Source: Blepharisma stoltei ATCC 30299 (lineage: Eukaryota; Protista; Ciliophora). Taken from it: DNA of 64,000 bases. The stretch lies in NCBI GenBank assembly GCA_965603825.1, contig CBFDEM010000017.1, positions 434,001 to 498,000 of the forward strand, written 5' to 3'. This document shows positions 9,083-55,300 of this stretch, piece after piece. Within the stretch, counting starts at the first letter, position 1, and every line of letters begins with the position of its first letter. A model generated the notes under the pieces. That model was not told where the DNA came from, made no database searches, and worked only from the letters and a program-made list of their open reading frames with translations. Position numbers and translations under genes: made by a program.

Positions 9083-12000
9083 TTATTGATCATATTTTAT
9101 AAATATACATAAAGCTAAACAGTAAATTATCGTTGTATTTACAATATTTTCCAATTGTCCGTCGATAATATTATATGAATCTCTATCTGCAAGTACAAAT
9201 TCATTCTTAATTTCATTTGCTAGGACTATAATTTTATCAACAAAATCTAAATAAAACTGTATAGTGCCAGTTTTGAAAAATCCTACATCTTCAATATCAC
9301 CAATCATAGCCTGCATAGCTGAATCAGATCCATAATCCATAAATTTATAGCTCAATTTATTTTGCTCATAAATTTTTTGTTTTAAGTCTTTTGAGAGGAG
9401 TTTTGAGTATTTTCTAGATCGTAATTTTACTGTTAGAGTATCTATATATTCAATTATAGTTGCTTCCTCTGGCAGGCTCTGAGCATAATCGTAAAATTCA
9501 GGCACGAAATGATAGATAAAATCAACAACCCGGTCCCTTGAAAAGAGAGATAATCTCATAAGCAAAGCTCTTCTGATAATAAAATTGTTGAGCAAAGAAG
9601 GACGAGTAGTCATCATTTGATCTAGTATAGGGTAGAAATAGTTGAAAATCAATAAATAATAAGACGCAGCAACAGCAAAGAAAAGCATTATTCTTCAAAT
9701 GTATTGCAAGTAAAGTGTACCTTTCACTTTTCTTGTGTGAGAAGTGTTTCTTTGAGATTCTGGACTAGTTTCTAACTTGCATTCGAGCCCATGTGTTGTT
9801 GCCAGCCTGTCCATTGCACAGCATTTTAGCTGAAGCATAGCCCATTGCACACTGTTTAAAGTGAAATTTCAAAATTCATCTACTTTTTTTGCTACAAGCA
9901 TAATATAGCCAATAATAATCAAGACCAAAACTCCAAGAGTGCAGAACCCAGATATCAAAAGAATGTTAATATTAACTCCAGTGCTTTTTACCCTCTCAAT
10001 TTCACAGTCCACCAATCCATCCATTATCCTATCAGCATCGTGAAAAATTCCACCTAACCCATTTACATATAAAAATTTACCATGATGTCAGTAGCCTTCG
10101 TCTGCATTTATAGCTGAGATAAAGTTTTTTGCCTATATATATCGTACATTGTAAATGTAGTTTGCTACAGTATCATAGAGATTTTCTTTCTTGTTTTGTG
10201 GTGTTTTTTGCTCGAAGTATCATAGTAATATTGAAGGTTCTCTGACAACTTTTGAGTGAGGACAATAACTTCATTGTTCGAAATCTTTGAAAAGAGACCC
10301 TTTAATTTGTTCTAAATCATCAATAAGGTCTTTTAATTTGCTGAGCTCTGAATCTAGTTGTTCTTTTGATCCACCATATATATATACTGCAGTAATGGTG
10401 AGTGCAAGATCAGCAGAGAGCTCAAAATCGTATACCAGTCTGCCAAAATTTTGAAAGGAGCCTAAAGTACTTGTATAAGATACGTCGCTTCCCATATAAA
10501 TTAATATGGCAACGTCAGTTATTATGACAGAAAACATCTAAATATTCATTACCACCAAAAACAATACAAGCTGCAGCACCCTTATTTTTCTTTTCGAGTC
10601 CATAAGTAGCTTTTTTGCTTTGTGATGAGTATTCCCTGATCCACCTCTCGATCTGCTTTCGGAGTCTGATTTTTTTTCCATTAAATTTTTCACCTCAAAT
10701 ATATGGTCTGCCTGCTGACTATCATGAGTATATGTAAAGATCGTGGTATCTGGATTTTCATAAGTTTTTGTTGGTGCTAAATAATCTGTAGAATTGAATG
10801 CTATTTCTTGATGTTCTTTTGCTGCTCATTCATTTTCATCTTCATCTGAATAAACTGGTTCAATTGGTCCTGCCAAAACTTGAGGTCTGTCTTCTTTCCC
10901 CTTTTGAAATTCATTTATATTGTCAATTATTACAATCATATGAATATTTTTTGTTTTTATAGTTTTCGTTATGTAAGTCATAGCTATTTCACGATCATTT
11001 AGCTTGAATGTAAATGGCTCAGCTTCTTTCATCTTGAATAAGTCAGATATAGGAATTATATCGGATAAAATATTACCTTTGATATTTTTCCCTTCTCAGC
11101 CAAAATATTTTAAAAATCCTTCTGTATATGATAAAATTATCCCTTCTTCTGAAATCAAGGCAAGCTGTCTTTGTATAGAGCACTCTCTAAATGATATTAA
11201 AAAATAAGCGCAGTTATGAAATGCAGTTAGTTTTATCATAAAATTGCATTCAAGAAGATAACCAGTGTTTTGTAAGAAAAATAATGTATCGTGGGATAAA
11301 ATTTCTGTTGAATTGCAATTAAATATAAAATCTTTCATTAATTTTTCATGACGTAAGCTATACGGTTGAGGAATAAAATTTAATATAGATAAGCCTATGA
11401 TGTTCCCCATAGATGACATCAGAAGCTGAGAAGCCTTATCATTGATATATACAATAGTACCAAAATTTTCGCTAGAGCATGAAGCGAGAATTGTAGGAAG
11501 GTCTTTGCCATAATTTTCAAGATTTCTTTCATAATTTTGTTGACTGAAAAAATTTATAGTGCTTTTTTTCCTGATAATAAAATCAGCTTCCTCATGGTTA
11601 TTTACTATCGCATCAAGAAAGGTCGCATAATATTCAAATACTTCCGAGTTTTTATATTTCTCTATCAAGCTATTATATCCATCACTCAAGAAGTATATAT
11701 TTTCAGCTGTACGGTCCACTAAATGGGATAACTTATCCAGTCTAGGATTTTTTGATGAGAATTCAGCTTGCAGTTCTGTTAAAATCAAGCAAAGCTCTTC
11801 ATCATTTTTTTTAATTTTACTAAAATCTTTTAAGTACTTTAAGTGATCTATATCATTAAATGATGATTTGTGCTCTCTGAAAAGCCAATTAAAAAGTCTT
11901 CATTCTTGTATATCTCCTTCAAATGATGATTTAGTATCTGCGATTTTCGTAAGTTTTATTCTTGCTAATCTTTCATCTTTCATAATAAAATAGCAATAGT

Positions 12001-16700: not shown

Positions 16701-18003
16701 GTATATCTCCTTCAAATGACGATTTTGATTCCCCAATTTTTGTGAGTTTTATTCTGGCCAATCTTTCATCTCTCATAATAAAGCAGCAAAAATTAAACTC
16801 TCATATCACAAACAGCTTATCTTTATTAAATCCAGGTAAACCCCAAAATGCTTTAAATAGCTCAATAACTTGCTCTTTGTTTTCCAGGTTTTCATCAACT
16901 AGTAAATTCCTATATTTCCTTTCAAAATCAAATTGAGTCAGAATTGAAGTTTCTGAGCTTGGCATTTTTTCGTAATTTTTCCAAATTACCCATATAGCGA
17001 AATAAATTATAAAAGGTAATAAAAATAAATGAAGCCAAACAATAATTAACGAATTGTCAGCTAGCTCCCCAAACATGAGGATTAATAATGTGCATGACAC
17101 TGATGCCATTTTGCAAACATGAATGCAATTTTCAATTGGATTAAAATATTGCAAAAATTGAATGCTACGCACACATAAAAATAAGCTAAAAAGAAAAAAA
17201 ATGATTTGGAATACCCAGGCATAATTATTTCCAATATATACATAAAGCATACATATTGTCATATAGAACCAACGTCTGGTTAAGTCATATTCAGCACAAG
17301 ACCTTGCTTTTAAATTTTTCTTGAAATTTGAGTGCCTCATATCACAAGAAAAAGCTTCACAAAATAAATTTATAAAAATCAGCGCTAAAAGGCAGCAAAT
17401 TCCTATAATAACTCCTAAAACTCCATAATTAAAGGTTTCTGACGAAAAATTTCCTGAATATTCCTCAATCACAGTTTTGTTTGAAAAAGAATATTTAATA
17501 ATCATAGCTAAAATCATCGTGGTCGGAATAATGCATATCGATGTTAGCAATAAAGCTATTTTTCTTGGCAAAGCTGCAAGTATCATTGGAACATCTTTTT
17601 CTATATACATAAAAATCCCAAAAACTGCGAAAGATCATAAGCAAGCCCCTATCAGCGAAATTGTCCCATAAAAGCAGAAATCTGCTATCTCAAAACTTGC
17701 GCAAGCTTCATCATAACTTATAAGAGAAAATGATTTTCAAAAACTTTTATAAGAATCTCAATCAGATGGGGTTAAACTTGGATGCCAGGATAAGGTAGAG
17801 AGCTGAAGGGTAAATATCACATTGATAATTATTTCGTAAAATAATTGGTTTCTGAGTCTTGTGTGAGTGCTGTATTTCGTTTTAAAAATGTGTCCAAAGA
17901 AACCATAAAGGTACTCTTTTATTGGATTAGAAAAGATTGCATGTGAAGTAAATTCATGAAAATCGGTGCTTTCCTTTTGTTCATTGTCTAAATCAGTATT
18001 CAT
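13798..18003 (-). CDS. TmcB-like PAS membrane protein, copy D (~1391 aa)
   Basis: ORFs 17758, 16801, 15331 and 13798 share one frame. Introns 15331-15345 (gtaagaaatatttag) and 14926-14940 (gtaatatagatttag). Close paralogue of B and C. Confidence 0.85.
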
Positions 18004-18392: not shown

Positions 18393-18960
18393 CTAGATTA
18401 TTAAACTATCTGTCAAAATTGACGAAAAAATTGAAAATCTTTCCATTGTTTTGGTTGATAATTTAAGTAAGCATTCAATACAAGATAAAAACGCACACAT
18501 AGCTACTGAATAAAGTACTGTAGCATTCACAATGATATCTAACTGCCTGATGATTATATCAATTGAATATCTATAGTCCAGACTGCAGCGTATCAGGTTC
18601 ATATGAAAATTTCTTAAAATCAATTCTTGAGTTCTTAAAAAATTAATCGGCTACACGCGAAGGCAATCTTATTAAGCCGAATAACCCTAAAATTTAAAAA
18701 GATGCACTTTTGATAGCCTAGCTCTCTTAAAAAAGGGCTCATGGCTTAAAAAGTCAACAGTTTCAGTTATTAAGAGGATGCCATATAAACATATATGAGT
18801 TGAGGACTCAATAAATCAACGTCTCAATATCGCCCACATTTCCAACAATAGAGATTTTAGACCCTTCTCTTAAAGCAGTCATTTGTGAATCAATGACTTC
18901 ATATACCCTTTTTTTGCTCGCTGAGTGATTTGATATGAGATTGCTTACTTTTATCGACGC
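18393..18960 (-). pseudogene. Decayed 3' fragment of a TmcB-like paralogue (E/K type)
   Basis: Minus strand gives SIDIIIRQLDIIVNATVLYSVAMCA..ERFSIFSSIL. 18810-18910 resembles RVYETIDSQ..LKQGS..DIETLIYW of copy E. Interrupted by indels and unrelated sequence; boundaries approximate. Confidence 0.7.
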
Positions 18961-19837: not shown

Positions 19838-22800
19838 ATGTCATCAGATTTTGAAGTAGGGGATAAAGAAAGCAATGATTTCCGTAGTTTTATTGCTGAA
19901 TCTTTTTTTTCAAACAAATTGAAAGAGTATGTCTATGGCTTTTTTGGGCATCTGTTTAAGGAAAAATACAGCCACAATACTAAATTTAGGATGCAGGTAT
20001 TTTATGAAATTTTGATAAATTTTATTATAGTTTTACAGCTTTCTCCACTTGCCTGATATCCAGAAATGAAAGCAACAGGGTGGGATTCTTATGTTTGATT
20101 TTGGCAAGACATATCCTATATAAGTTACGACGGTATTTGTGCATACTACTCTATTATGAATTTTTGCTTTTACGGCACCGTCATACAGATTGGTGCTTGT
20201 TTTGGATCATTTGCAATTTTTTGGCTTTATATTTACTTTGATAAAAAAATTCCAAAATTTATATCAATTTTGCCTAAAAAAATTGCAATGCTTATGACAT
20301 CAATTTGCATTATCCCAAGCACTATGATATTAATTCTAGTGATAAAATATTCGTTAATTAATCGAGCTACAATAGAAGAATACAATAATTCGCTTTCTTC
20401 TGATACTTATAATTTTGGCACTTATGGAGTAATTTTCGGAATAATTTGTTTATCAGCATTAATTTTTGTAAATATTTTTTGTGAAGCTTTTACCTGTGAT
20501 ATGAAGCATTCTCACTCAAAAACTAATATAAAAGCTAGGGCATGTGCAGATTTTGACTTACAGAGAAGATGGTTTTATGTAATTTCATGTGTTTTAAATG
20601 TATTTTTAGGGACTGATAATGCAGTTTTATTCCAATGCATAAGCTTTTTATATTCATTTTATTTATATATTCACTGTATATGAGATGTGCAATATTTTAA
20701 TCCTATAGAAAACGCAATTCAAGCTTCCAAAATGGGGTCAATTTCAGCACTTTACTTTACTTTTTTGTTTGGGCAGCTGCTAAATGATGCACTAGTAATA
20801 ATAATTTTTACTTTATTTTTGCAGCCAATGGTCATTTTTATGACTATTTGGATAGTCTATAAAGGCCACAAAAACCTAGAAAAATCGATCCACAGCCCAA
20901 AAGACCAATTCCAGTTCGAGCGAAAATTCCGACATTTATTGACTGATGAAAACCTTTCAGACAAAGAAGAAGTTATAAATGTCTTCAAAAAATACTGAAA
21001 ACAAACTTTATTTCATAAGGACAAACTTTTCGTGATCTGGGAGTTTAATTTTTGCTTTTTTATTATGAAAGACGAAAAACTTGCCAGAATAAAAATTTCG
21101 AAAATTGCGAGTGCGAAATCTACATTTGAAGGAGACGCCCAAGAGTGGAGACTGTTTGATTGACTAATAAGAAAGCAGCACTCAGTATTTCCTGATACAA
21201 GCTATTTGGAGTTTTTAAAAGAATTCAGCAGAGTAAAAAGCCAAGATGAAGAGCTCTGCTTTATACTGACTGAACTGCATGCAGAATTTTCTTCTAGAAC
21301 CCCAAGAATCCAAAAACTTGTGAATTTAGTGAACAGGTCTGCAAATCATATAAGTTTTGTGGATACTGGGTATAAATCTCTAATAGAAAAGCACAAAAAT
21401 ATAGAAGCCTTAGAAATGTATGCTGGCTTCCTTGAAAATATCATTAATAATCACGATGAAGCTAATATGGCAATGAAGAAGAAAAATGGAATTAATTTTT
21501 ATAACCATAACAGCGGCAATAATAGTCTGGAGAACTATGGGAAAGAACTCGCAACAATTCTTGTGTCTTGCGCTGATGATTCTTTTGGGACTATTGTCTA
21601 TCTCAATGAAAAAGCCTCACAGCTGCTGAAGGCTCCTATAGGGAGTATTCATGGCTCATCTATTTTGAACTACATTCCTCAGCCTTATGACGCTTTGCAT
21701 GAAAATCTGATACGAAATTTTATATTTGAATGCAACTCTACAGAAATTATCCCTCACAGGCAGCTTTTTTTTCAAAATCATGCTGGGTTTTTGGTAGAGA
21801 CTCATTTTCTAATAAAATTAACTGCCTTTCATAACTGCGCTTATTTTTTGATTTCTTTTCAGCCAAGAGACATTTCGAGAGAACTAGCTATATTAAGTGA
21901 AGGGGGTATAGTTATTGCTCATACAGAAGCATTTCCTTATTATATAGGTATTGAAGAAAAAAGTGTAAAAAATAAAAAATTAGTAGACATAGTCCCTGTT
22001 TTAGATACAGACCATATGAAAGAGCTTGAACCTTGGTTGCTTCCTTTTAATAACACTGAGCTTATGATCGTCCTGATGAGAAAACAAATAAAAACCAAAA
22101 CAATTCGTTTATTAGCAGTAATTCATGATGATGCAGGGATAAAAAATTGAAAAGAAGGGAACCCTCATGGTCAAATCGATTTTTTGTCCTCATTAAACCT
22201 TGTAGATCAATATGATAATGATACTGATGAATCCCCAGTGATTACTAAGCCAGTTTTAACAGTCAAATTTCAACAGATAAATTATTCATTATCAACAAAG
22301 ACTTTTGATGCAATAGAAAACGAAACAAGCACTCACTTTGATAATTTAGGAGACAAAGAAAAAGCTGACCAAGAAAAACTCTCTGACAACAACTCACAAT
22401 CTGCTTCAACTAAAACCATAAATCCTACAGTCGCGAATTATTCAAAAAAACTATTTTTGGAGTCTAAGAAGAAAATAAGAGCTCTACAAATTATTTTATT
22501 TGTGGTGGTAAGAAATAAGCAGATGTTTTCTGTGATAATAACAGTGGCAGCTATTTTAGGCTATATGAAATCTGATGTCTTGTACACTACTAGGCTGAAA
22601 GGGCTTATTCGATTTAGCCAGGTTTTATATGATATAAGCTCATTTGCTGAGGTTGCTAGATCCATAAGCCAAGATGCTCTTAATAATGATATAAATAGTG
22701 AAGACATAAACAGCTTGCAAAAACTTATAGAAAATATCACAGCAATTCAGGATGAGTATTTTAATGATTTTAAAAACTGGAAGCATTATCCAAATGCAAA

Positions 22801-22901
22801 AAAGCCAATTTGCCTATTATTCCTCTGTGGTATTTTGATGGAGAATCTCCAAAGATGGAGCATAGAAATTTTTATAACTTGATTTCTGATTTTATTCTAA
22901 G
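19838..22901 (+). CDS. TmcB-like copy E, 5' part (split by inversion; 1-nt frameshift near 22800)
   Basis: ATG 19838 (MSSDFEVGDKES). ORFs 19832, 20156, 20687, 21206 and 22184 are in one frame. Intron 22508-22522 gtaagaaataagcag. Homology continues in a shifted frame (LPIIPLWYFD..NFYNLISDFIL) and stops at CTAAG 22897-22901, one base before the conserved intron-2 site. Confidence 0.8.
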
Positions 22902-23322
22902 AGAAGCCAGGAAGACAAAGTGGAAAGCATTGAAGACGAAGGAAAGTCCCAGAAGGAAGTCACTAATGAAAGTCTGGAGGGTCCAGGTGAAGGAATTCAA
23001 ACGTGAGGTGGAGCGCCAGAAGAAACTCAGATGGCAGGAAAGGAAGGCTGAGCAAGCAGCAATGGACATGAAGAGCTGCTGGAGCTCCATGCAAAAACTC
23101 AAGCGTTCAATGAGAGCGAAGCCGCCAAGATTCTCGAGACTTGAAACAGAAGCCTTGGTTAGCTGGTGGGAAGCACAGTACTCCTCCGATGATTCGGGTC
23201 CCCTCCCTTCACTTAGAGAATGAAATCCACCCGAACGAGCTGAAGTAGAGACAGCCATCAAAAGCTTAGGGAATGGCAAAGCAATAGGAAATGACGGAGT
23301 GCCGGCTGAGCTGATCAAGTAT
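22900..23322 (+). mobile_element. Non-LTR (APE-type LINE) retrotransposon fragment: linker and start of RT domain
   Basis: Abrupt rise in GC. Translates REARKTKW..SWWEAQYS..REW(TGA)NPPERAEVETAIKSLGNGKAIGNDGVPAELIKY. EV..AIK.L..GKA.G.DG.PAEL.K is the characteristic motif preceding the RT core in APE-type non-LTR ORF2. Confidence 0.85.
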
Positions 23323-23841
23323 TTGATAAAATTATAATATCCTGTTACAGCATCATTCTTAAAGGATAGCAATTTAAAGGCCTCTTTTTATATCGCATTA
23401 CTGTCAAATGTACAATTTTTTTAAGTCTATGATGTAGCCAAATTTCCTTGTGTGCAATTTTCTTATAGGGAGCATCTGGCTGGAAATAAAGCTGAGAAAC
23501 AGGGTAACGGAACTTTGATGTATATATCAGGCATGTGCTTTCTCTTACCTCATGGAGCTAATCCCTATGGGTTTTACCGCAATTTTTCGAAATGCATAGT
23601 ATCGAAAAACCTGGAGAGCAGAACTATCTAGACTACTCAAGGTCCTATTAGGCTGGATGAGCCTAAGAGATGCTGTCAGTTGTTTTCAAGGGAATCAGTT
23701 CTAAGGACTCTGGTGTTAGAAAATCTCGCCCATTGTGAAAAACTCTCTTGTGACAGAGGAAGGGTGCCAATAAAATCCCTCTAAGATGATGTTAGCATTT
23801 AGGGTGCAAATCCCCAACGTGTTGATGGCAAACGTCGATTA

Positions 23842-23856
23842 CTAATCTAATCTAAT
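23842..23856 (+). repeat. (CTAAT)3 short tandem repeat, possible non-LTR element 3' tail
   Basis: ctaatctaatctaat ends a GC-elevated block (~23460-23840) downstream of, and on the same strand as, the RT fragment. The role as a tail is inferred. Confidence 0.3.
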
Positions 23857-24764
23857 AATAAATTTGGTTTTATAATTAAATTAAAGAGTAAGGCATGATT
23901 AAGAAAATTTTCCAAAGAGAAATGAAAGTAAAGTGCTGAAATTGACGCCATTTTCAAAGCTTGAATTGCGTTTTTAATATGGTTGAAATATTTAATATAT
24001 CAAATACAATAAATATAAAGGTAAATGCTTAAATAAAACTGATATATTGGAACAAATTCACGTTATCACTCCCTAAAAGCACATTTAAAATGCGTATACT
24101 GTATAAAATTATGTTCTCTGTAAATCAAAATTGCGTATCAGGTATTTTCTGCCAAAGTTTTTCTTCTGATTGTTTAGCCGAATGTTCTTCTTTTGAGACA
24201 CTTACTAGCAAAATAAAAATTTCGACAAAAAAGTCGACAAAAATTTAAAGCCCTGACTATCAACTTGATTGGCGAGTAAAAATCTTTATGCTAAAATTAT
24301 ATATAAAAACAATTTAAAAAATCAAGAATAGTAATTATTTGAAACTAAAAATAATAATGCTATGAGTTTATGCTGTAAAAGATAAAATGCAATATCTTAT
24401 CTTAAACTTTTACTATAGTCGTGCCAATAGTTCTCTCTTTTATATAAAACTCTTTAAAAAGCCACCAAACTCCTCCTAAATTCTACATCACAAATTCCAC
24501 CAGAGCTCTATATGCATCTGCATCACATTGAGAAATGTTGTTTTCAAATTCATCACCTACTTGCTCATACAAGACTGCTATCAAAAGTCAACAATTTCTC
24601 TGCAGATTCATTAGGTTTCCAATTTCAATTGCCCCCGAAATTAAACAAAAACCCAATGCACAATTTCTATTCAAATTTCAAGGTAGCTGAGCTTTTCCTA
24701 TTTCATTTTCTTCATAGTCATGTATTTCATACCGCTAAGGATCATTTTTAACGCCCTCCAATTC

Positions 24765-25183
24765 AAATGTGGATCCTTAATACAAAATATTCTCATGATA
24801 ATCCTTGCATTGGCTCGAAAAACTATTAGATGCTAAAGATTATTAAAAATAAAATATAAAAAACTAGAGATCTTATGAGCCAAAACATGAATTGCATATA
24901 TTAAAAAAACTGATAAAGGGTAAACTAATAGGAATATTTTAATGCTTTTCTTGCTAGCAGATGAGTAAGTATTACTATTAATCAAATCTGCGCAAGACCT
25001 GGCTTTTATATTTCGTTTTGAGCGAGAGTGCTTCATATCGCAACTAAAAAATTCACAAAAATATTTACAAAAATCAATGCTTGTAAACAAATTATCTTCC
25101 ATAAATTATAAGTTTCAGAATAAAGTGAATCACCATATTATTCTATTGTGGCTCTTTTAAATACGGAATATTTTATCACTAGG
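24765..25183 (-). pseudogene. Decayed, internally deleted N-terminal fragment of a TmcB-like paralogue
   Basis: Minus strand LVIKYSVFKRATIE*YGDSLYSETYN and FCEFFSCDMKHSRSKRNIKARSCAD match copy E (LVIKYSLINRATIEEY..; CDMKHSHSKTNIKARACAD). Contains a TAA stop, frameshifts and deletions. Left boundary approximate. Confidence 0.75.
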
Positions 25184-26963
25184 GCCAGTCCTGTAAAGCT
25201 GCTTCTTCTTGTCTGAGATTCTTAAACGCTCTACCTCGGTTGCAGAAATGCAAAGGATTTTTAGGTTCACGATTTATCATCTCATCATAGCATTGTATTG
25301 CTTCTTGATATCTTTCTAAAACGCAAAGAGTTCTGGCTTTATCATTATAATACTCGATCTTATATGGATTGCTTTTGATTGCTTCGTTATAGCTTTCTAC
25401 TGTTTCTAGATATCTTCCTAATTCATTTAAAGCTTGCCCTTTCTTATAGTAAAAATCAGCTTTTCCTGGGTTCAGTTTTATTGCTTCGTCATAGCATTCG
25501 AGTGCTTCTAGATATCTTCCTAAACCATAAAAAGCTTTACCTTTATTAAAATAAAATTTAACGTTGTTTGACTCGAGTTTGATTGCTTTGTCATAACATT
25601 TGATTGCCTCTAGGTGTCATTTTAAATTATTAAAAAATTTGGCTTTAGTACTGTATAAGAAAAAGTCGTTTGGATTGCATTTGATTTCTTCGTCCAATAG
25701 TTGTATTCCTTCTAGATTTTCTCCTAAAGTGCATAGATCAGTATCTTTTAAATTGCATTTATCTAGATAATAAGGATCAAGCTTAAAATTCGGGTCATTG
25801 CGTTTTTTTGCTTCAATCTTTTCACCTACTCTTCTAAGTGAGAAACAATCATGATAGTAAGCAGCCTCAATGATGATTTTTTGATCCAAATTTAAATAAA
25901 AATATTCTTCAACCGAATTCAAAACAGTTGAGATCCATATTCCTCCTTTATTATATGAGTAATAAATTTGATAAGGATCGTATTTGGTTTTAAATTTTCC
26001 TATCTGTCTCCAATTCAAGTAGCTTCCAATTTCGCTTTCATAGATTGATCCAGGGTATTCAATCAAGTATAGTCTCTCTGCATTTATCAGGATCTTTCCT
26101 TTATACCCAAACTCATAAGGAATAACTGAGAAAGAGTCAATATCAATTGAGTATTGCCAAATATTTCTATTTTCATACCCAGAAATCAAAATACTCTCAT
26201 TGAATATTACACTACTGCACCCATAAATCGGTTGTGACATTGGAGTTAATTGAATTCATTGATTTTGATCCAAATCGAATTTGCTAGATAGAGTTAAACA
26301 ATCAGACCAGCCTTTTCCTCCAAAACAATAAATGCTGTTATTGAGATAGATGCATGATGAGGCCACGCAAGGAGTTCCAGATGGCAGCTCTTCGACTCCA
26401 CCATTCCCATCAATTAACACTGTAATTCCAGAAATTAAAAAATTGCCAAAGCCGAATATCTTGCCATTTGGAAGCTGAGTTATGCAAGTGCCTCTGTCTA
26501 GTTTTGCTGAAGTCTGCAAGGTCTTGACTTCTTGGGTTTCAGTTTCAGTGTTAAAAATTTTCAAAGCAGCTCCGTCATCTTGATCTATAATGCTATAAAG
26601 AGATGTCTTTTGCTGATAAGCATTAAGATAATCTTGGTAAGCTTGCATTAGAGGTGGATCATTAAGACTAGAATTGGTCTGAATTGCTGAGCAAGCTGTC
26701 CTGAAATCTTTTTCTAATTCTGGATTGTTTGGTCTACTCAAAATCTCAGCTGTGTTTTTTCTTAAGGTGTCTATAGCATGTAAAGCGGTTTCTGTTTCTT
26801 TGGGCTTGCTGACGAGATCATTAGGAACACTGCTTATTTGAGAGCTTATATCATTTTCTGGGGGGTTTTCTATTGGCTTGCTTTCTTTTTCAGGCTCTTT
26901 TAAATTCTCACTGTTCTCTTTTGTTATCAGAGAAATCGAATCCTTATCGTTTGCTGACTCCAT
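25179..26963 (-). CDS. Kelch-like beta-propeller plus TPR-repeat protein (~594 aa, TGA=Trp), probably 3'-truncated
   Basis: ORFs 26256-26963 and 25617-26240 join through TGA and continue through the TGA at 25617 to TAG 25179-25181 (1785 nt, in frame). Kelch-like IYLNNSIYCFGG and SVIFNESILISG. TPRs EAIKCYDKAIKLESNNVKFYFNKGKAFYGLGRYLEALECYDEAIKLNP and following repeats. Confidence 0.8.
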
Positions 26964-27200
26964 TTAATGGCCAGATTTAATTAGATGAAATAGTAATAGC
27001 ACTGTAATTTCGTAAATCTTTTATAAATTAATGTTTTTAGATTTATCGCCCACTTATTTCCTATGTTTTACAAATTTACAACATAATGATCATATTTATT
27101 GTGCTATTTCTATCATGTATTCAAATAAAATAAAAAATCCCAATAGCTTCACAATTGACTATTTCTTATAATAATCCCTAACTACATTAATCTAATTATA

Positions 27201-28356
27201 CTAATAAAGCCTTCCATGATCCAAATCAGCTGGCAAAATTGATGGTAATACCGAAAACCTTTTCAACTGCCCTATTTGGTAATTTAAGTAAGGCAAATAA
27301 TACAAGAAAAAAAGTGCACATACAGCTATTGAATAAATCACTGTAGTATTCACAATGGTGTCTAACTGCCTGTTGATCACATCAATTGAGTCTTTATCAG
27401 CCAGTTTGAATTCTTCTGCGATTTCGTTTAGCAGTAAATCAACTTGATAATCAAATTTCTTAATATCAATAATAGAGGGGACTCAATAAATCAATGTCTC
27501 AATGTCAAACATCAAGTCAGCAGTTGAAGCTTCAGACCCTTGTTTTAAGGTCGCCAATTGTGAGTCAATGGTCTCATATACTCTTTCTCGCAGATCGCTT
27601 GACATCAAAATTGCGTATTTCTCATGCCGTATTTCTTTGTTTTGTAATTTTAATAGTCCTATCATTGCGTCTTGGGCAGCTACTGAATTTTTAAAGGGGT
27701 AAAGTTCTGGGATTTTTTGATAATTGTAGTTATAGTAAATTTCTTTTGAAATTAAAGAAAGACGGACTACCAATAAGCGCCTTGAAATAAAATTGCTTAG
27801 AAGATGTGGGCGATATAACATTGAGGATTCACATATAGGATACAAATAGCAGTATATAAGCAAGTAATAAGAAGCAGCAATTATAAAAAAGAGCATAATT
27901 CTTCATATATACTGCAAATAAATTGTCATCTTTACTTTCCTATTTACACTGCCTACCCTTTGAAGCTCCATATTAGAGTCAATTGAACTATCTACTCCAT
28001 GGACACTAGCTAGTCTTTCTATTGAAAGGTATTTCAGCTTAAGCATAGACCGTTGAGCATTATTCAGAATATAATTCCAAAACTCATCATGCTTCTTTGA
28101 GACAATTAAAATATACCCAAAAATCACTAAAACTAACGCTCCTAAGGTACAAAACCCAAAAATCAGCAATATATTGATTATAGTTCCAGTATTTTTTACC
28201 CTTTCAATCTCATTTTCAATAAGCCCGTTTAAGCTTATATTAGGACAATGGAATCCATTTCCCAAACCATTTATATATAAAAATTTTACATAAGGCAAAA
28301 AGTCTTGGTTTTCCTGAACTGCAGTCAATATTTTTTGGCCCTACATAGATTTTACG
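27201..28356 (-). CDS. TmcB-like copy E, 3' part (intron 2 plus last exon, inverted)
   Basis: Intron 28341-28355 (gtaaaatctatgtag) is followed by 380 codons with no TAA/TAG until 27201-27203: GQKILTAVQENQ..YYLPYLNYQIGQLKRFSVLPSILPADLDHGRLY*. Most similar to copy K, as is the 5' part of E. Confidence 0.8.
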
Positions 28357-28650
28357 CTTAGCATTCTGAGCGTTTCCGAGGTAAGTGAGTTCTCTGGCCT
28401 AGGGCTTATATAGCCCAAAGTATCGGCCGCTGCAAACAAGAGAGTCTCGCACACCTTTGAATAGAGAGTATCAGTTGGGAGTCCTCCACTTGGTATATTT
28501 GAGAGCCTGTCCGCTACTGCTGACTGGTAGGCTCTTAAGTAGTACTTATTATTTAGTCTGTCGAGCCTAATCCTCCGCTTCTGATGAAATTCCTTCAACT
28601 CAACAAACAATCGGAGGGAGAGGGAGATGGGAGAATGGTCTGAAGGGATC
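28357..28650 (-). mobile_element. Non-LTR retrotransposon fragment: end of APE endonuclease plus linker
   Basis: GC-rich. IPSDHSPISLSL matches the terminal SDH motif of APE/EEP endonucleases, followed by a linker ..LYSKVCETLLFAAADTLG..TSETLRML. Confidence 0.8.
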
Positions 28651-29687
28651 AAAAAAATAATCAGTTAAGAAAAGAGTAGTTGTCAGTTTATGAATTTCTA
28701 CAGCGCTGAGTTGACAATAATTGGATTTTGATATAAAGACCTGGATTTCTTATAGTTTGTGAAGCGAGATTCTAGCAGCTACAACAAATAACTACTTCTT
28801 ATTGCTTGTGTAAGCTTTAATTATAGAATTGCTATAAATGCTAAGAAGATAGCTAAAACTACTCTTAAGCACCATCTGAGTCCTCTTTTGATTCTTATAT
28901 AATATTTCGTCAAACGTTGACGCTTGCCACCATTGCTTTGCTTGTATTTCTTTGAAAATCGCAATTATATAATAAGGTGCAATAATTAACTATTGATGAG
29001 GGAGTTTTGTTTCTCAGGAAGGCTTTTACCGTCCCTGCCTGATCGGTTATACAGACTTCTCCCGGTTGTGTTTTGCTTATCGGGACTAAAGGGCATCAGC
29101 AAGAGTTAACTCAAATCTAGGGAGCTAATAATAGTTTAGGTGGGTTTACAAGAAAGGCAGACTAGTTGCCTATCTACTTATGGCCTTATAGCACTAGTTT
29201 AACTTAATCTTTAAATTAAATGTGATGATAAAGTTCCCAGAAAGTTAGGAGATTATTTCAATCCATCTGGCAATAATAAATTTACTTATATATTTTACTT
29301 AATTTTAGAATTATTACCATTTCTTGATTTCTGAAGACTTTTTGTGATTCTAAGAAAAATAATTCATTAATAAAAAGGAATTCCCGAATAGAATATTTAT
29401 TCTGTTTTCCCATTTATTAACTCAAATAAACCTTATAAAAGAGCGATGAGTGCTTTTTTTCTCAATTTCTGTGCACTATTTAATTATTAAGATAGTAAGA
29501 CATGGCATATTTAACGCATAAAATTTCAAAGATATGCAAAAATAAATCTTCTCCCACTATTTATTGAAATTCATAAAATTCCTATTTTATAAAATAGCCA
29601 TAGATGTCTAAGTATTAAGCTAGAATAAGACAAAACCATTAAAAATTAAGATTATCTCAAAAACCAATATGCTGAATATATATAATC

Positions 29688-32600
29688 ATGATTTCTAATA
29701 GCAAAGACGAAAGAAATTATTTCTGAAATTTTTCTCATTTTGAAAAACCTTCCTTTATGAGACGAATGCAAAATCTAATTTTCTCATTCTTTGGCGAAAT
29801 CTACGAAGTTAAGTATAGCGGTAAAACTAAATGAACTACGCAGCTTATTTATGAAATTTTTATCAATGTTGTCATTTCTTTGCAGATGAGCTCTTTGGCT
29901 TGATATCCAAATTTATCAATAGATGAATGAGAATCATATCATAATTTCTGAGTACTGATCGGCGTTGCAAATTACAGCGAAATCTGTGGATGGTTTAATA
30001 CGATGGATTTATGTTTCTACGGGACCATATCGACTATAGGCGCATGTCTTGCATCTTTTATAGCTTTCGGAGTTTTTTTTTACTTCGAGAAAAAGCCGCC
30101 AAGTTTGCTCATTATTGTCCCAAGAAAAATAGCTGGAGTAATTTCCACAGTTTGTTTTATTCCAACAACTATTATTTTACTGATGATTCTAAAGTACTCA
30201 ACTGGAAAGTTTGAATCAGTAGATGAATTCACTGGCTCAGTCACCAAAAACTTGAATTTTGGACCAATTGGGATGGTATTTTCAATACTGTGTTTATTGG
30301 TTTTAATTCCTATGGCCATATTCACAGAAGTGTTCAGTTGTGATATCAGACATTCTAAATTTAGAAAAAATATAAAAGCTAGATCTTCTGCAGCCTTGGA
30401 CTTGCAAAGAAAGCTATTTTATGCTTCTCTTTGTGTATCTTATATCACATTAGGTGTGAAAAATGCTATCATTCATCAAATTTTCTGATTTTGTTGCTCA
30501 TTTTTTGTTTTTATAAAAATATTATGGCTGCTGCATTTCTTTAATTATATAGAAAACGCAATTCATGCTTATAAATTTGGGTCAACCAGCCTAATATTTT
30601 TAATTTTTATATTTGGGAGCTCAATAAATAATTCTTTGATCACATTGACATTTACTTTGATTTTGCAACCAATAGCAATTTTATTGATTTTTCATTATAC
30701 AAAAATACAATATCAGAAGCTTAAAAATAACAGTAAAATCCCCAGAAATCAATATGATTTCGAAAGAAAATTCCGTCATTTATTAACTGATCAAAATTCT
30801 GAAGACAAAGCAAATATTTTGAAATTATTTAATCAATATTCAAAATTGACATATTTTAAAAAAGATAAACTCTTTGTGGAATGGGAATTTAATTACTGCC
30901 TGCATACTTTAAAAGATGAACGGCTTGCCCGTGTGATTTTAGCAAAAGCAGGATATTGTGAATCCTCATTTGAAAGCAGCGTTTATGAGTGAAGAATCTT
31001 GGAAAAATTAAAAAATAAAGCAAATGAGCCAATTCCAGAATTTATTTATTTGGAATATTTAAATGAATTTGGAAAAACCAAATATTTCGATAAAAAACTA
31101 TGCTACTTGATAATCCAACTGCAAACAGAGTTTTCTTCAAAGTCGCCAAGATTTAAGGTCCTTGTCGACCTGACGAATAGAGCATCAAAGTGCATGGAAA
31201 AGGTCAAGAGCAAGTATAGCAGTATTATCGAAAAATACGCAAATATTGGAGGGTTTGAATTATATGCAAGCTTTTTAGAAAATATTGAGCACAATTATGA
31301 AGAATCTGACAAAATCAACAAAAGGAAAAGCGGCATTGAAATTTTTAACCAAAAAAATCAAAGCTTAGACAGATATGGCAGGCATCTTGGAATAATTCTT
31401 GCATCAAGCTCTAAAAATTCACTTGGCTTAATAGTTTACATCAATGAAAAAGCAGCTGAAGTCTTAAAAGTCTCATTATCTGATGTTATTGGTACTTCAG
31501 TTTTCAATTTTCTCCCTGAGCCTTATAATCAATATCATTCTAAAACTACAAAAAATTTCCTAAGCAGTTCAAAAAGTGTCGAAGTCCCATACCATCAAAA
31601 TTTATTTCTTGAAACCCACAGAGGGTTTCTGGTGGAATGCAATATGCTGATAAAGCTTACAGCTTATAACAGCGATGTTTATTATATTATATCATTTATT
31701 CCAAAAATCACAAGTAAACAGATTGCATTAATTTCAGAATCAGGAGCTATATTAAGCCACTCAGAAGCTTTTCCACGTTATTTAGGGCTAAATGAGAAAT
31801 GCTTAAAACATTTTCATATAGAGCAAGTTGTGCCATGCCTTGAAATAAATAAAATGAAAATTTATGAGCCAGTATTAATGAGACTAAATATCATCGATAT
31901 TGCCCTGGTGCGGATTGACAAACAAATAAATTCAAAAACTTTAATTATATTATATTTACTTCACGAGCAAGGTGATATAAAAAGATGAAAAGAAGGCAAA
32001 GATGAAGACCAAATTTCCCATTATCGTGAACGAGAAAGAACTATTGAAGAAAATTCGCATCCTAAAGAGCTCTTAGATCATAGAAGAGACACTAAATACC
32101 AGCAGCTCAAGGAATGCTCAATTTCTTTCAGATTGAGCGAAATTGAAAATTTACCTGAATTATCAGAAAATGAAAATAAATCAGTCGCTGATAATATATC
32201 TGTTGGAAATGATAATCATAGCCACTCATCGATAAAATCAAGTATTTTTTATTTAGGACATGCACAACACTTAATAGTAAAGACCTCAAAAAAAATAAAA
32301 GTGCTTCAATGAGTACTATTAGCTATAGTAAAAAAAAATTAGACTTTAACTATAATATCCACTATGATTGCGGTTATTTCCAATATGATAAGCAACGTAA
32401 ACTTGACCTCATCTATGAGCATTTTCTATAAAATTGGAGATATTTTGTATAATTTTGGAATTTCTGCTGATTTAGCTAGATTAACTGATAGGGAAAAATC
32501 ATTATCGTATAATTATACAACCCATCTAAGTCAGCTATTAGAAGCTATGGAAGCTTTAAAGGAAAGCCAAAGTGGGATAATTTCAGATCTTGAGCAATGA

Positions 32601-52323: not shown

Positions 52324-55300
52324 CTACTCCAACTCAACTGGCAAAATTGAAGGCAAAACCGAAAATCTTTTAAGCTGCTTGATTTGATAATTAAAGTATG
52401 GCAAATAATAGAAGAAAAATAGCACGCAAACAGCTATTGAATAAATAACTGTGACATTCACAATTGTATCTAACTGCTTATTAATTATATCAATTGAGTC
52501 TCTGTCAGCTAATAAAAATTCTTGCCTAATCTCATCTTGCAGTATATCAATTTGGTTTAAAAATTCATTAATATCAATAATTGATGTATAAATCCAATAA
52601 ATCAAGCTTTCAATATCACTTATGATATCAATTGATGAGACTTCGACGCCCTCTCTTAATGACTTTGTAGGCGAGTCTATATTTTCATACATTCTAGTTT
52701 GAAGCTCAGATGATATTATTGATAAATATTTCCCTTTGCGAATTTCTTTGTCCTCGAACTTTAGCCAGTCCACCATTTCATCTTGGGCAATATCATGATT
52801 TTCAAAAGCATAAAGTTCTGGGATTTCCTGGTAATTATATTTTTGGTATATTTCCCTTGACACTATAGAAAGTCGGACTATTAACTGCCGCCTATTAATA
52901 AAGTTATAGAGAAGCTTAGGGCGGTTTAACATTGAATTTTCACAAATCGGGTACAAATAGCAATAAATAAGCAAATAATAAGAAGCCGCAATTAAAAAAA
53001 ATAGCATAATTCTTCATATATACTGCAAATTGAGCTTTGTTTTCACTTTTCTAGTTAAATTAAAATGTTTTTGTGAATCTATAGCAGCTTCGCTGCTATT
53101 ATTTTGATCAATTCCATGTGCAGTCGCCAGTCTGTCCATAGCTTCACACTTTAATTTAAAAACAAACCATTGGGCATTATTTAAAATATAATTCCAAAAT
53201 TCATCATGTTTTCCTGAGACAAGGCAAATATAGCCTATAATAACTAAAACTAGCACCCCCAAGGTGCCAAAACCGAATATTAAAAGGATATTAATGATTG
53301 TGCCTGTGTTTTTTACCCTATCAATTTCGCAGTCAACTAGACCTGAGACACTAAGGTTTGCATAGTGAAAAGCGTTTCCCAAGCCATTCACAAATACAAA
53401 TTTTGCATTTGAAGAGAATTCTTGGCTTGCAACAATTGCGATTTTCATTTTTTGAGCCTGAATAGAATTTACATTCAAAATAAGTCCGGAAACAGCGTCA
53501 TACAAGTTTTCATAGCCGATTTCTGGCGTATTTCCATTAAAATGCCACATTGGAACTTCATTTTTGGTGATTATTTCTGTGCATTTGCAATAACTTCACT
53601 GGTCAAAATCTTTCAGCATTGAATTCTGCATTATTGTCAGATCTTCGACGATTTTTTCTAATTTTTCAGTATCCCCTAGAATTTCTATATCCGAGGCATT
53701 TCCTAGCACGCCCATATGCAGATTTTTTGCTGCATCTGCTATAGAATTAATATCATATAAAATTTGGTTAAACCTACTAAGCGTGCTTAATTTACTTGTA
53801 TATGATACATCGGTTTTCATATACCCTATAATAGCAAGAACAGTCACAATAACTGACGACATCTAAATAATTTTTTACGACAATAAATAAGACTATTTGG
53901 AGGACCCTGATTTTCTTTTTGCATTGCAATAGTAAACTTTTGGCATAGTTTGGGACTTTATATTTAGCAGTTCTTGTTGAAGAAGAAACGCGTGAGTTGT
54001 TATCGGAATTTGACACAATTTCATGATGGGTTTTCAAGAGGGATTGCTCGTCAGCATCTTGGTGAGTTGAGATGTCTGCGTCCACTTTGTCTAATGATTT
54101 TGCTGTTAATGTAAAATTTAATTCATTAAAATTGACTTTTAATAACTGTATTGATTTTCGCCGGTTTTCTGACGAATCTTTGTCATTTTTCTTTAATGGG
54201 AGAATTTGTGAAACTTGGTCTTGGCCTCTTCCTTCCTTTCAGTTTTTAATTTCTCTATAGTCATGAATCACCACAAGTGTATGGACTACTGTAGAGGTGA
54301 TTTTTTTCTTTATATGTACAAAAACTAGCTCAGAGCCATTAAACGGAATCCTCCATGGCTCAAATTCTTTCATGTTATTTATGTTCAAAATCGGGATTAA
54401 GTCTGACAGCCGCTTATTTTTTAAACATTTTTCATCAGAGCCTACATAATAAGAAAACGTCTCTGTGTGGGCAATGATAACGTTTTCTTCAGAAATTAAG
54501 GCAAGCTCTCTAACTGTAGGTTTTAACTTAAATGAAATCAAAAAGTAAGCAGAATTGTGAAACGCAGTCAGTTTTATAAGAAAATCGCATTCCACAAGAA
54601 ATCCTGCATGATTTTGGAAAAAAAGTTTTGAGTGAGAATGAAGCTCTATTGAATTGCATTCAAATGCAAACTCTCTCATAAGTTTTTCGTGAATACTATC
54701 ATAAGGCTGAGGAATGTAATTTAAAATTGTTGACCCCAGAATACTCCCGATAGGGGCTTTTAAGAGCTGGGCAGCTTTTTCATTTAAATAGACAATAGTC
54801 CCAAATGAATGTTCTGATAAGGAGACGAGGATAGTGGCGAGCTCTTTTCCATAGCTTTCAAGATTATTTATATCAGTATGCTGATTATAATAATTAATCC
54901 CGTTTTTCTTTCTTATGATAATGTTGGACTCTTCATGATTATTTATAATATTTTCTAAGAATGATGCATAAATTTCAAGGACTTCGACGCTTTTGTGCTT
55001 TTCCGCCAAATTTTTGTAGCCGTCACCTACATGTGCTATATGATTTGCTGACCTATTTACTAAATTGATCAATTTTTCTACCCTGGGTGTTCGAGATGAA
55101 AATTCAGCTTGAAGCTCTGCGAGAATAAAGCAAAGTTCTTCATCTTGGCTTCTGATTCTGCTGAATTCTTTTAAATAGTCTAAATAACTGGTTTCTGATG
55201 ATTCTATGTTATTTTGCTTGATAAATCAATTAAATAGTTTCCATTCTTGGACATCTCCTTCAAATGTGGATTGTGCATAGGCGATTTTTGATAATTTTAT

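Follow-up and report, generated by a model that had tools for sequence, protein, structure and literature searches.

A seamless 5.46-kb inversion with germline-limited BogoMITE-type insertions at both junctions divides a TmcB/PAS-type gene and a LINE relic in Blepharisma stoltei

The inverted segment and the two sequences divided by it

The stretch of DNA analysed here (the window, 64,000 nucleotides) corresponds to positions 434001-498000 of contig 17 and belongs to the somatic, macronuclear (MAC) genome of the ciliate Blepharisma stoltei. The MAC genome of strain ATCC 30299 has been published as 64 telomere-to-telomere contigs, with UGA read as Trp and introns of 15-16 bp, and the sequenced strain is virtually homozygous (PMC9942806). 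The genome searched in this work comprised 41.46 Mb in 64 contigs. Within the window, a 5.46-kb segment bounded by CTAAG (22897-22901) and its reverse complement CTTAG (28357-28361) divides two sequences, a gene for a TmcB/PAS-type membrane protein (gene E) and a relic of a long interspersed nuclear element (LINE). When the segment was flipped in silico, both sequences were restored with a gap at neither junction. A preliminary description of this DNA, made from the letters, had proposed a conservative reciprocal inversion at a TA-containing 5-mer. Both 5-mers were located and both partners were regained on flipping, and the seamless inversion was confirmed. In the base composition of the window, two breakpoints chosen at random would share an inverted match of 5 bp with a probability of about 0.002.

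The 5' half of gene E lies on the plus strand at 19838-22901 and was assigned by the Pfam family PF25474 (TPR_TmcB), a weak PAS match and the public gene table. Its stop codon in the public annotation is the junction TAA at 22898-22900. The closest full-length paralogue, copy K (52.3-56.5 kb, minus strand), is collinear with this half over 770 codons free of stops. The rebuilt gene E was aligned to K over 181 nt without a gap, and in the case of the left junction as assembled the similarity to K stops exactly at CTAAG. Between 22726 and 22819, about 90 nt ahead of the junction, the 5' half changes frame relative to K, probably at the run of six adenines near 22797. This change could be due either to early decay of a broken gene or to a homopolymer error. 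As a result of it, the annotated open reading frame (ORF) leaves the frame of the family and ends at a TAA which is the target-site duplication of the transposable element of the miniature inverted-repeat type (MITE) described below.

The detached 3' half was delimited by translation and by collinearity with K to 27201-28361 on the minus strand. Its 386 codons extend from 28361 as far as the TAG at 27203-27201, and the continuation of gene E runs from 28356 downwards; the public annotation covers only 27201-28046. The sole in-frame stop is situated within a 15-nt GT..AG stretch, GTAAAATCTATGTAG (28355-28341), which on its sequence is a plausible 15-nt intron. The counterpart of this stretch in K, GTAAATTCTATTCAG (53440-53455, minus strand), is also a GT..AG 15-mer but is stop-free and in frame, so both the intron and the coding reading are possible there, and in K the 15-mer may be either spliced out or translated. 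With its change of frame, the 5' half of E is not entirely intact. A functional gene E is absent from the MAC, where it is represented by two oppositely oriented pieces annotated as proteins of 1015 aa (5' half) and 281 aa (3' half).

The LINE relic is GC-rich. Its 3' part, from the linker after the apurinic/apyrimidinic (AP) endonuclease to the start of the reverse transcriptase, is situated at 22902-23322 on the plus strand (G+C content 0.50) and was detected when two long LINE ORFs from the genome were used as tblastn queries. The 5' part, consisting of the end of the AP endonuclease with the 'SDH' motif and of the linker, was detected by tblastn at 28362-28664 on the minus strand (G+C content 0.47). 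Joining the minus strand from 28664 to 28357 with the plus strand from 22902 to 23334 resulted in a stop-free frame of 247 codons, with TGA read as Trp. In the comparison with five other LINE copies of the genome the rebuilt frame showed no gap across the junction ('..RML/REAR..'), which is spanned by the conserved motif 'L-L-R-E-A-R..W-K-A-L-K'. The amino-acid identity to the long ORFs on contigs C21 and C60 was 36-39% over about 240 residues. In three of the copies (on C60, C21 and C25) the matches to the two parts are directly adjacent on one strand and fall between matches to PF14529 (Exo_endo_phos_2) and PF00078 (RVT_1). The expected contiguity of the LINE across CTAAG in other genomic copies was thus found at the protein level.

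The contiguity was judged on proteins, part by part, because a DNA search of the genome with the two LINE parts returned self-matches only. The Pfam search gave no match on the LINE pieces, as these are situated between the catalytic domains. No PF00078 or PF14529 match was obtained on contig 17, and no reverse-transcriptase or endonuclease domain of its own was found in the LINE relic, which is a fragment and not an element.

BogoMITE-type insertions at the junctions

A protein search with the ORF across the left junction resulted in a sole match, the annotated protein P0001 of the locus itself, and was uninformative on an un-inverted allele elsewhere. Via P0001 a second public record for the same contig was reached, CAJZBQ010000017.1 (755,546 bp; assembly GCA_914767885.1). 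The blastn comparison of this record with the window showed blocks of 100% identity, and between the blocks 20 inserts with short, mostly TA-containing direct repeats. On this block-plus-insert pattern, CAJZBQ010000017.1 behaves as the hybrid assembly of MAC sequence and internal eliminated sequences (MAC+IES assembly) presented by Seah et al. 2023 (PMC9942856). The excerpts compared, L022-L025, cover 528.7-551.1 kb and 600.8-646.5 kb of the record, together about 68 kb.

In the MAC+IES assembly an insert is located exactly at each junction, according to the blastn blocks and the boundary sequences. The left insert has 389 bp and stands between TAA copies at 22898-22900, and the right insert has 386-389 bp, stands between TTA copies at 28358-28360 and is in the opposite orientation. 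In the MAC window each junction has a single TAA or TTA and the insert is absent, i.e. the inserts are germline-limited and are excised precisely. At either end of both inserts stands the inverted terminal repeat published for Bogo and BogoMITE, 5'-CTCCCCCCCCCCCTCCGTGAGCGAACAAAA, with its variable poly-C run; the start seen in both is CTCCCCCCCCCCCTCCGTGAGCGAAC... PMC9942856 describes BogoMITE as a non-autonomous member of the Pogo family of about 389 bp, with a C-rich inverted terminal repeat of about 30 bp and a TAA/TTA duplication doubling as the direct repeat of the internal eliminated sequence (IES). All the defining features examined were present in both inserts, which are classed by their sequence as full-length BogoMITE IESs ('MITIES'). 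The link to IES biology suspected in the preliminary description was thereby substantiated.

The left BogoMITE is located between the 5' half of E and the 3' part of the LINE, and the right one between the 3' half of E and the 5' part of the LINE; flipping the segment rejoins each pair. The two copies share 97% identity over 386 bp, the full-length match being obtained only on opposite strands, and they differ almost solely in the lengths of homopolymers. BogoMITE-type copies are dense in this region, at least 8 in 20 kb, and the IES density is about 1 per 680 bp of MAC sequence. The probability that both breakpoints fall exactly on MITE sites by chance is roughly 1e-6 to 1e-7.

The identity of the 5-mer at the two junctions was explained by the insertion preference of the element. 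Among the BogoMITE-type IESs of the compared MAC+IES sequence, the base preceding the duplication was C in 11 of 11 cases and the base following it was G in 9 of 11; in the window region 22000-29800, 6 of the 16 CTWAG sites are occupied by a BogoMITE-type IES. The palindromic C-TWA-G is the preferred target of the element. Precise excision leaves one copy of the duplication between C and G, which reads as CTAAG or CTTAG depending on the strand, and no further explanation of the 5-mer is needed. Its proposed role as a 'pointer' of unscrambling was accordingly abandoned: it is a BogoMITE target with one leftover copy of the TAA/TTA duplication. Elements of the PIF/Harbinger-Tourist group typically have a TWA duplication within a CTWAG-like palindrome, in contrast to the TA-duplicating Tc1/mariner/pogo elements. 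The published Pogo classification of BogoMITE rests on the transposase.

A further insert of the excerpt L022 (10358-10527), a 167-bp IES with the direct repeat TAT at 23320-23322 of the window, lies within the LINE. The LINE match in L022 extends over 9932-10525, through this insert, and adds about 57 germline codons that correspond to the start of the reverse transcriptase. Other retroelement copies of B. stoltei with coding sequence partly removed as IES are likewise reported in PMC9942856.

The order of the segments in the germline was deduced from the way in which the IESs had been called. According to the methods of PMC9942856, PacBio subreads from a germline-enriched sample had been aligned to the MAC assembly, BleTIES MILRAA served to predict the IESs from these alignments at a minimum coverage of 10, and the predicted IESs were then inserted computationally. 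At both junctions the order of the MAC+IES assembly is that of the MAC. An insertion call requires reads that align on both sides in the MAC order, whereas un-inverted germline molecules would result in split alignments on opposite strands. We infer an inverted germline locus with one MITE per junction, from which the MAC arises by ordinary IES excision and which would imply that gene E is broken in both nuclei. The preliminary description had regarded the inverted form in both nuclei as the mark of a fixed inversion, and the order deduced here would make it one. No indication of programmed unscrambling, in which the germline order is corrected in development, was obtained at these junctions, since the MAC+IES and MAC sequences are collinear and the MAC keeps the broken order.

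Origin of the inversion

The arrangement is probably the result of an exchange in the germline between two inverted MITE-IESs, that is, of an ordinary transposon-mediated inversion which broke one member of a gene family. The ancestral germline would have carried two young 389-bp BogoMITE copies in C-TWA-G sites and in opposite orientations, one copy interrupting gene E and one the old LINE relic about 5.4 kb downstream. The precise removal of each copy as an IES, at its TAA/TTA duplication, would be the reason why both were tolerated. The exchange between the inverted copies would then have flipped the intervening segment, most likely by ectopic homologous recombination. As both MITEs are still excised precisely, the MAC shows a seamless inversion with one CTAAG or CTTAG per junction and with E and the LINE relic each in halves. 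With 389 bp and about 97% identity, the copies offer a reasonable substrate for recombination. Ectopic recombination is the simplest route, since it requires the inverted orientation that was observed, the substrate is adequate and the copies are dense. The event was probably recent, because both MITEs are full-length and of low divergence and the halves of E have long open frames apart from one frameshift.

Three points weigh against this reading. All four duplications are TAA/TTA, so the exchanged duplications that are the hallmark of recombination between elements are uninformative here, and recombination gives the same sequence as cutting at the ends of the elements with rejoining in the inverted orientation. 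At 97% identity the two copies are not remarkably alike, given that an unrelated BogoMITE at a distance of about 60 kb shares 97.9% identity with the left copy; their similarity speaks neither for nor against a single duplicative event. Finally, the inverted order of the germline was deduced from the construction of a published hybrid assembly.

Another germline route, to which we assign a low probability, is that the MITEs were cut at their inner ends by a nuclease, be it the Bogo transposase or another one, and the 5.4-kb fragment was rejoined in reverse, or that a single aberrant transposition produced the second copy together with the inversion. Cuts at the boundary of the terminal repeat and the duplication with inverted rejoining would be expected to yield exactly the observed sequence, and intact Bogo transposase copies are present in IESs according to the passages of PMC9942856 on Bogo. 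Such a route does not need the copies to be mutually inverted, yet they are, as recombination requires. The near restriction of the differences between the junction MITEs to homopolymer lengths speaks for this other route; against it, Pogo-family elements move by cut-and-paste without duplication of the element. The possibility that the junction MITEs are unusually alike and hence stem from one duplicative event was rejected, as the unrelated copy is equally similar. Twin-priming of the LINE was rejected too, as the inverted segment includes 4.6 kb of non-LINE DNA with a complete TPR/Kelch-like gene.

The remaining explanations place the inversion in development, in the assembly or before the arrival of the MITEs. 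It is very unlikely that the germline is un-inverted and that the excisase cuts the four IES boundaries with the fragment entering the MAC reversed, be it as a fixed mis-joining, a programmed rearrangement or a switch of mixed orientation. The four boundaries are all TWA within C-TWA-G and their ends could in principle pair either way, and candidate scrambled loci from single-cell data of Blepharisma americanum are cited in the relevant passages of PMC9797194. However, both junction IESs were called as simple insertions against the inverted MAC reference, which requires reads collinear with the inversion; the MAC assembly has the broken form and not the restored gene; and the 5' half of E is frameshifted relative to K. 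An assembly artefact, with the 5.46-kb segment placed in the wrong orientation, is hardly credible: what could be cited for it is the general prior for an inversion seen in one assembly, no specific support having been found, whereas the breakpoints share just 5 bp with no long MAC repeat to mislead the assembler, the LINE parts and flanks occur once in the MAC, spanning insertions at both junctions were also obtained from an independent set of reads, the germline-enriched subreads, and the strain is virtually homozygous (PMC9942806). An inversion mediated by microhomology at CTAAG, by end joining or template switching with the MITEs arriving later, is just as hard to believe. It would account for the 5 bp of inverted identity, but these are fully accounted for by the MITE target site, and two later independent insertions exactly at the breakpoints would be needed, with a probability of roughly 1e-6 or less at the local density. 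None of the four readings offered in the preliminary description, namely a scrambled germline locus, a mis-joined product of editing, a somatic switch and a microhomology inversion, therefore fits the locus well.

Surroundings of the locus, known systems and implications

The tandem array of TmcB-like genes to which E belongs is structurally unstable. The gene tables of L023-L025 list several truncated members of 872, 655 and 887 aa, compared with about 1370-1400 aa, and some of the truncated members are followed by a paralogue of a second family with 489-492 aa (P0002, P0003). Inside the inverted segment, a relic of the 5' region of an E-like paralogue was detected by blastn and the genome search at 23912-25182 on the minus strand, with 76% identity to positions 436-872 of E; it is split by 852 bp of single-copy DNA (24132-24983). 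A second E-like relic corresponds to a 3' end and is situated at 18410-18911 (minus strand). Both relics are 74-77% identical to E and thereby nearer to it than K, the full-length copy, with about 69%. Their collinearity on the minus strand, seen in the present, inverted order, may be a sign of an older rearrangement.

A complete TPR/Kelch-like gene, annotated as 594 aa, occupies 25179-26963 on the minus strand; it was identified from the gene table with TPR families and has weak Kelch matches. It is a passive passenger of the inverted segment. The IES density between 17326 and 30975 of the window is very high, 20 IESs per 13.6 kb of MAC sequence, and several of them are inside coding exons of TmcB-like genes. 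One BogoMITE is nested within a 709-bp IES at window position 17606.

The locus is a new case of a known kind, an inversion mediated by transposable elements (TEs), in this case of the published BogoMITE family. Galileo elements reportedly sit at the breakpoints of inversions in Drosophila buzzatii. The retrotransposon recombination-mediated inversions between human and chimpanzee (PMC2603318) are similar in having inverted homologous copies at both breakpoints. As in TE-mediated inversions, each copy at the present locus is flanked by two ancestral neighbourhoods and there is no loss or gain outside the elements. In contrast to the classical cases, the elements of B. stoltei are erased from the soma in each sexual generation, which leaves a scarless junction that mimics a pointer-mediated rearrangement. 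The inserts agree with the MITIES in the passages of PMC9942856 on BogoMITE in the terminal repeat, the TAA/TTA duplication, the length of about 389 bp and the absence from the MAC at both junctions. They differ from the published MITIES in that here a BogoMITE pair brackets a gene-breaking inversion. The passages of PMC9942856 found by searching for scrambling and inversion contain no description of MITE copies at rearrangement breakpoints, and a full-text literature search for 'BogoMITE' gave only PMC9942856 and its preprint.

The scrambled genes of spirotrichs (PMC9797194) resemble the locus in that parts of a gene are oppositely oriented in the germline and short repeats are present at the borders of retained and eliminated sequence. 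In B. stoltei, however, there is no unscrambling here: the inversion persists in the MAC, where the gene is still broken; and the repeats, unlike spirotrich pointers, are the ordinary direct repeats of two non-scrambled IESs. The idea that recombination between IESs creates scrambled germline loci is said to go back to Prescott and Greslin. A model of this kind by Chang et al. 2005 is cited in the passages of PMC9797194 on the origin of scrambling. The locus is similar to such models in that an exchange between two IESs reorders retained germline segments, but here the exchange has led to a pseudogene within a redundant tandem gene family and not to a functional scrambled gene. To our knowledge, the Blepharisma lineage has no capacity to repair the order of segments.

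With the BogoMITE pair at its junctions, what appeared to be pointer-guided scrambling becomes a testable and mundane event. In the case of other scarless inversions with a short palindromic 'pointer' in MAC assemblies, the IES maps should be checked before unscrambling or repair by microhomology is called. Thousands of near-identical MITEs in genes, tolerated due to their excision from the DNA, stay substrates for ectopic exchange in the germline, and the broken paralogue in a redundant tandem family can be seen as a cost of the "MITE infestation accommodated by genome editing". As a concrete case from nature, the locus also illustrates the opening step in the IES-recombination models of the origin of scrambled genes. 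Every developing macronucleus has the two MITE-IESs cut at four TWA boundaries, with only 5.4 kb between them. In a fraction of the MAC copies the fragment might therefore be joined again in its ancestral orientation and an intact E be restored, an accidental 'unscrambling' at low frequency in a heterotrich, which we consider improbable. If true, such ancestral re-flipping would supply raw material for the evolution of programmed unscrambling.

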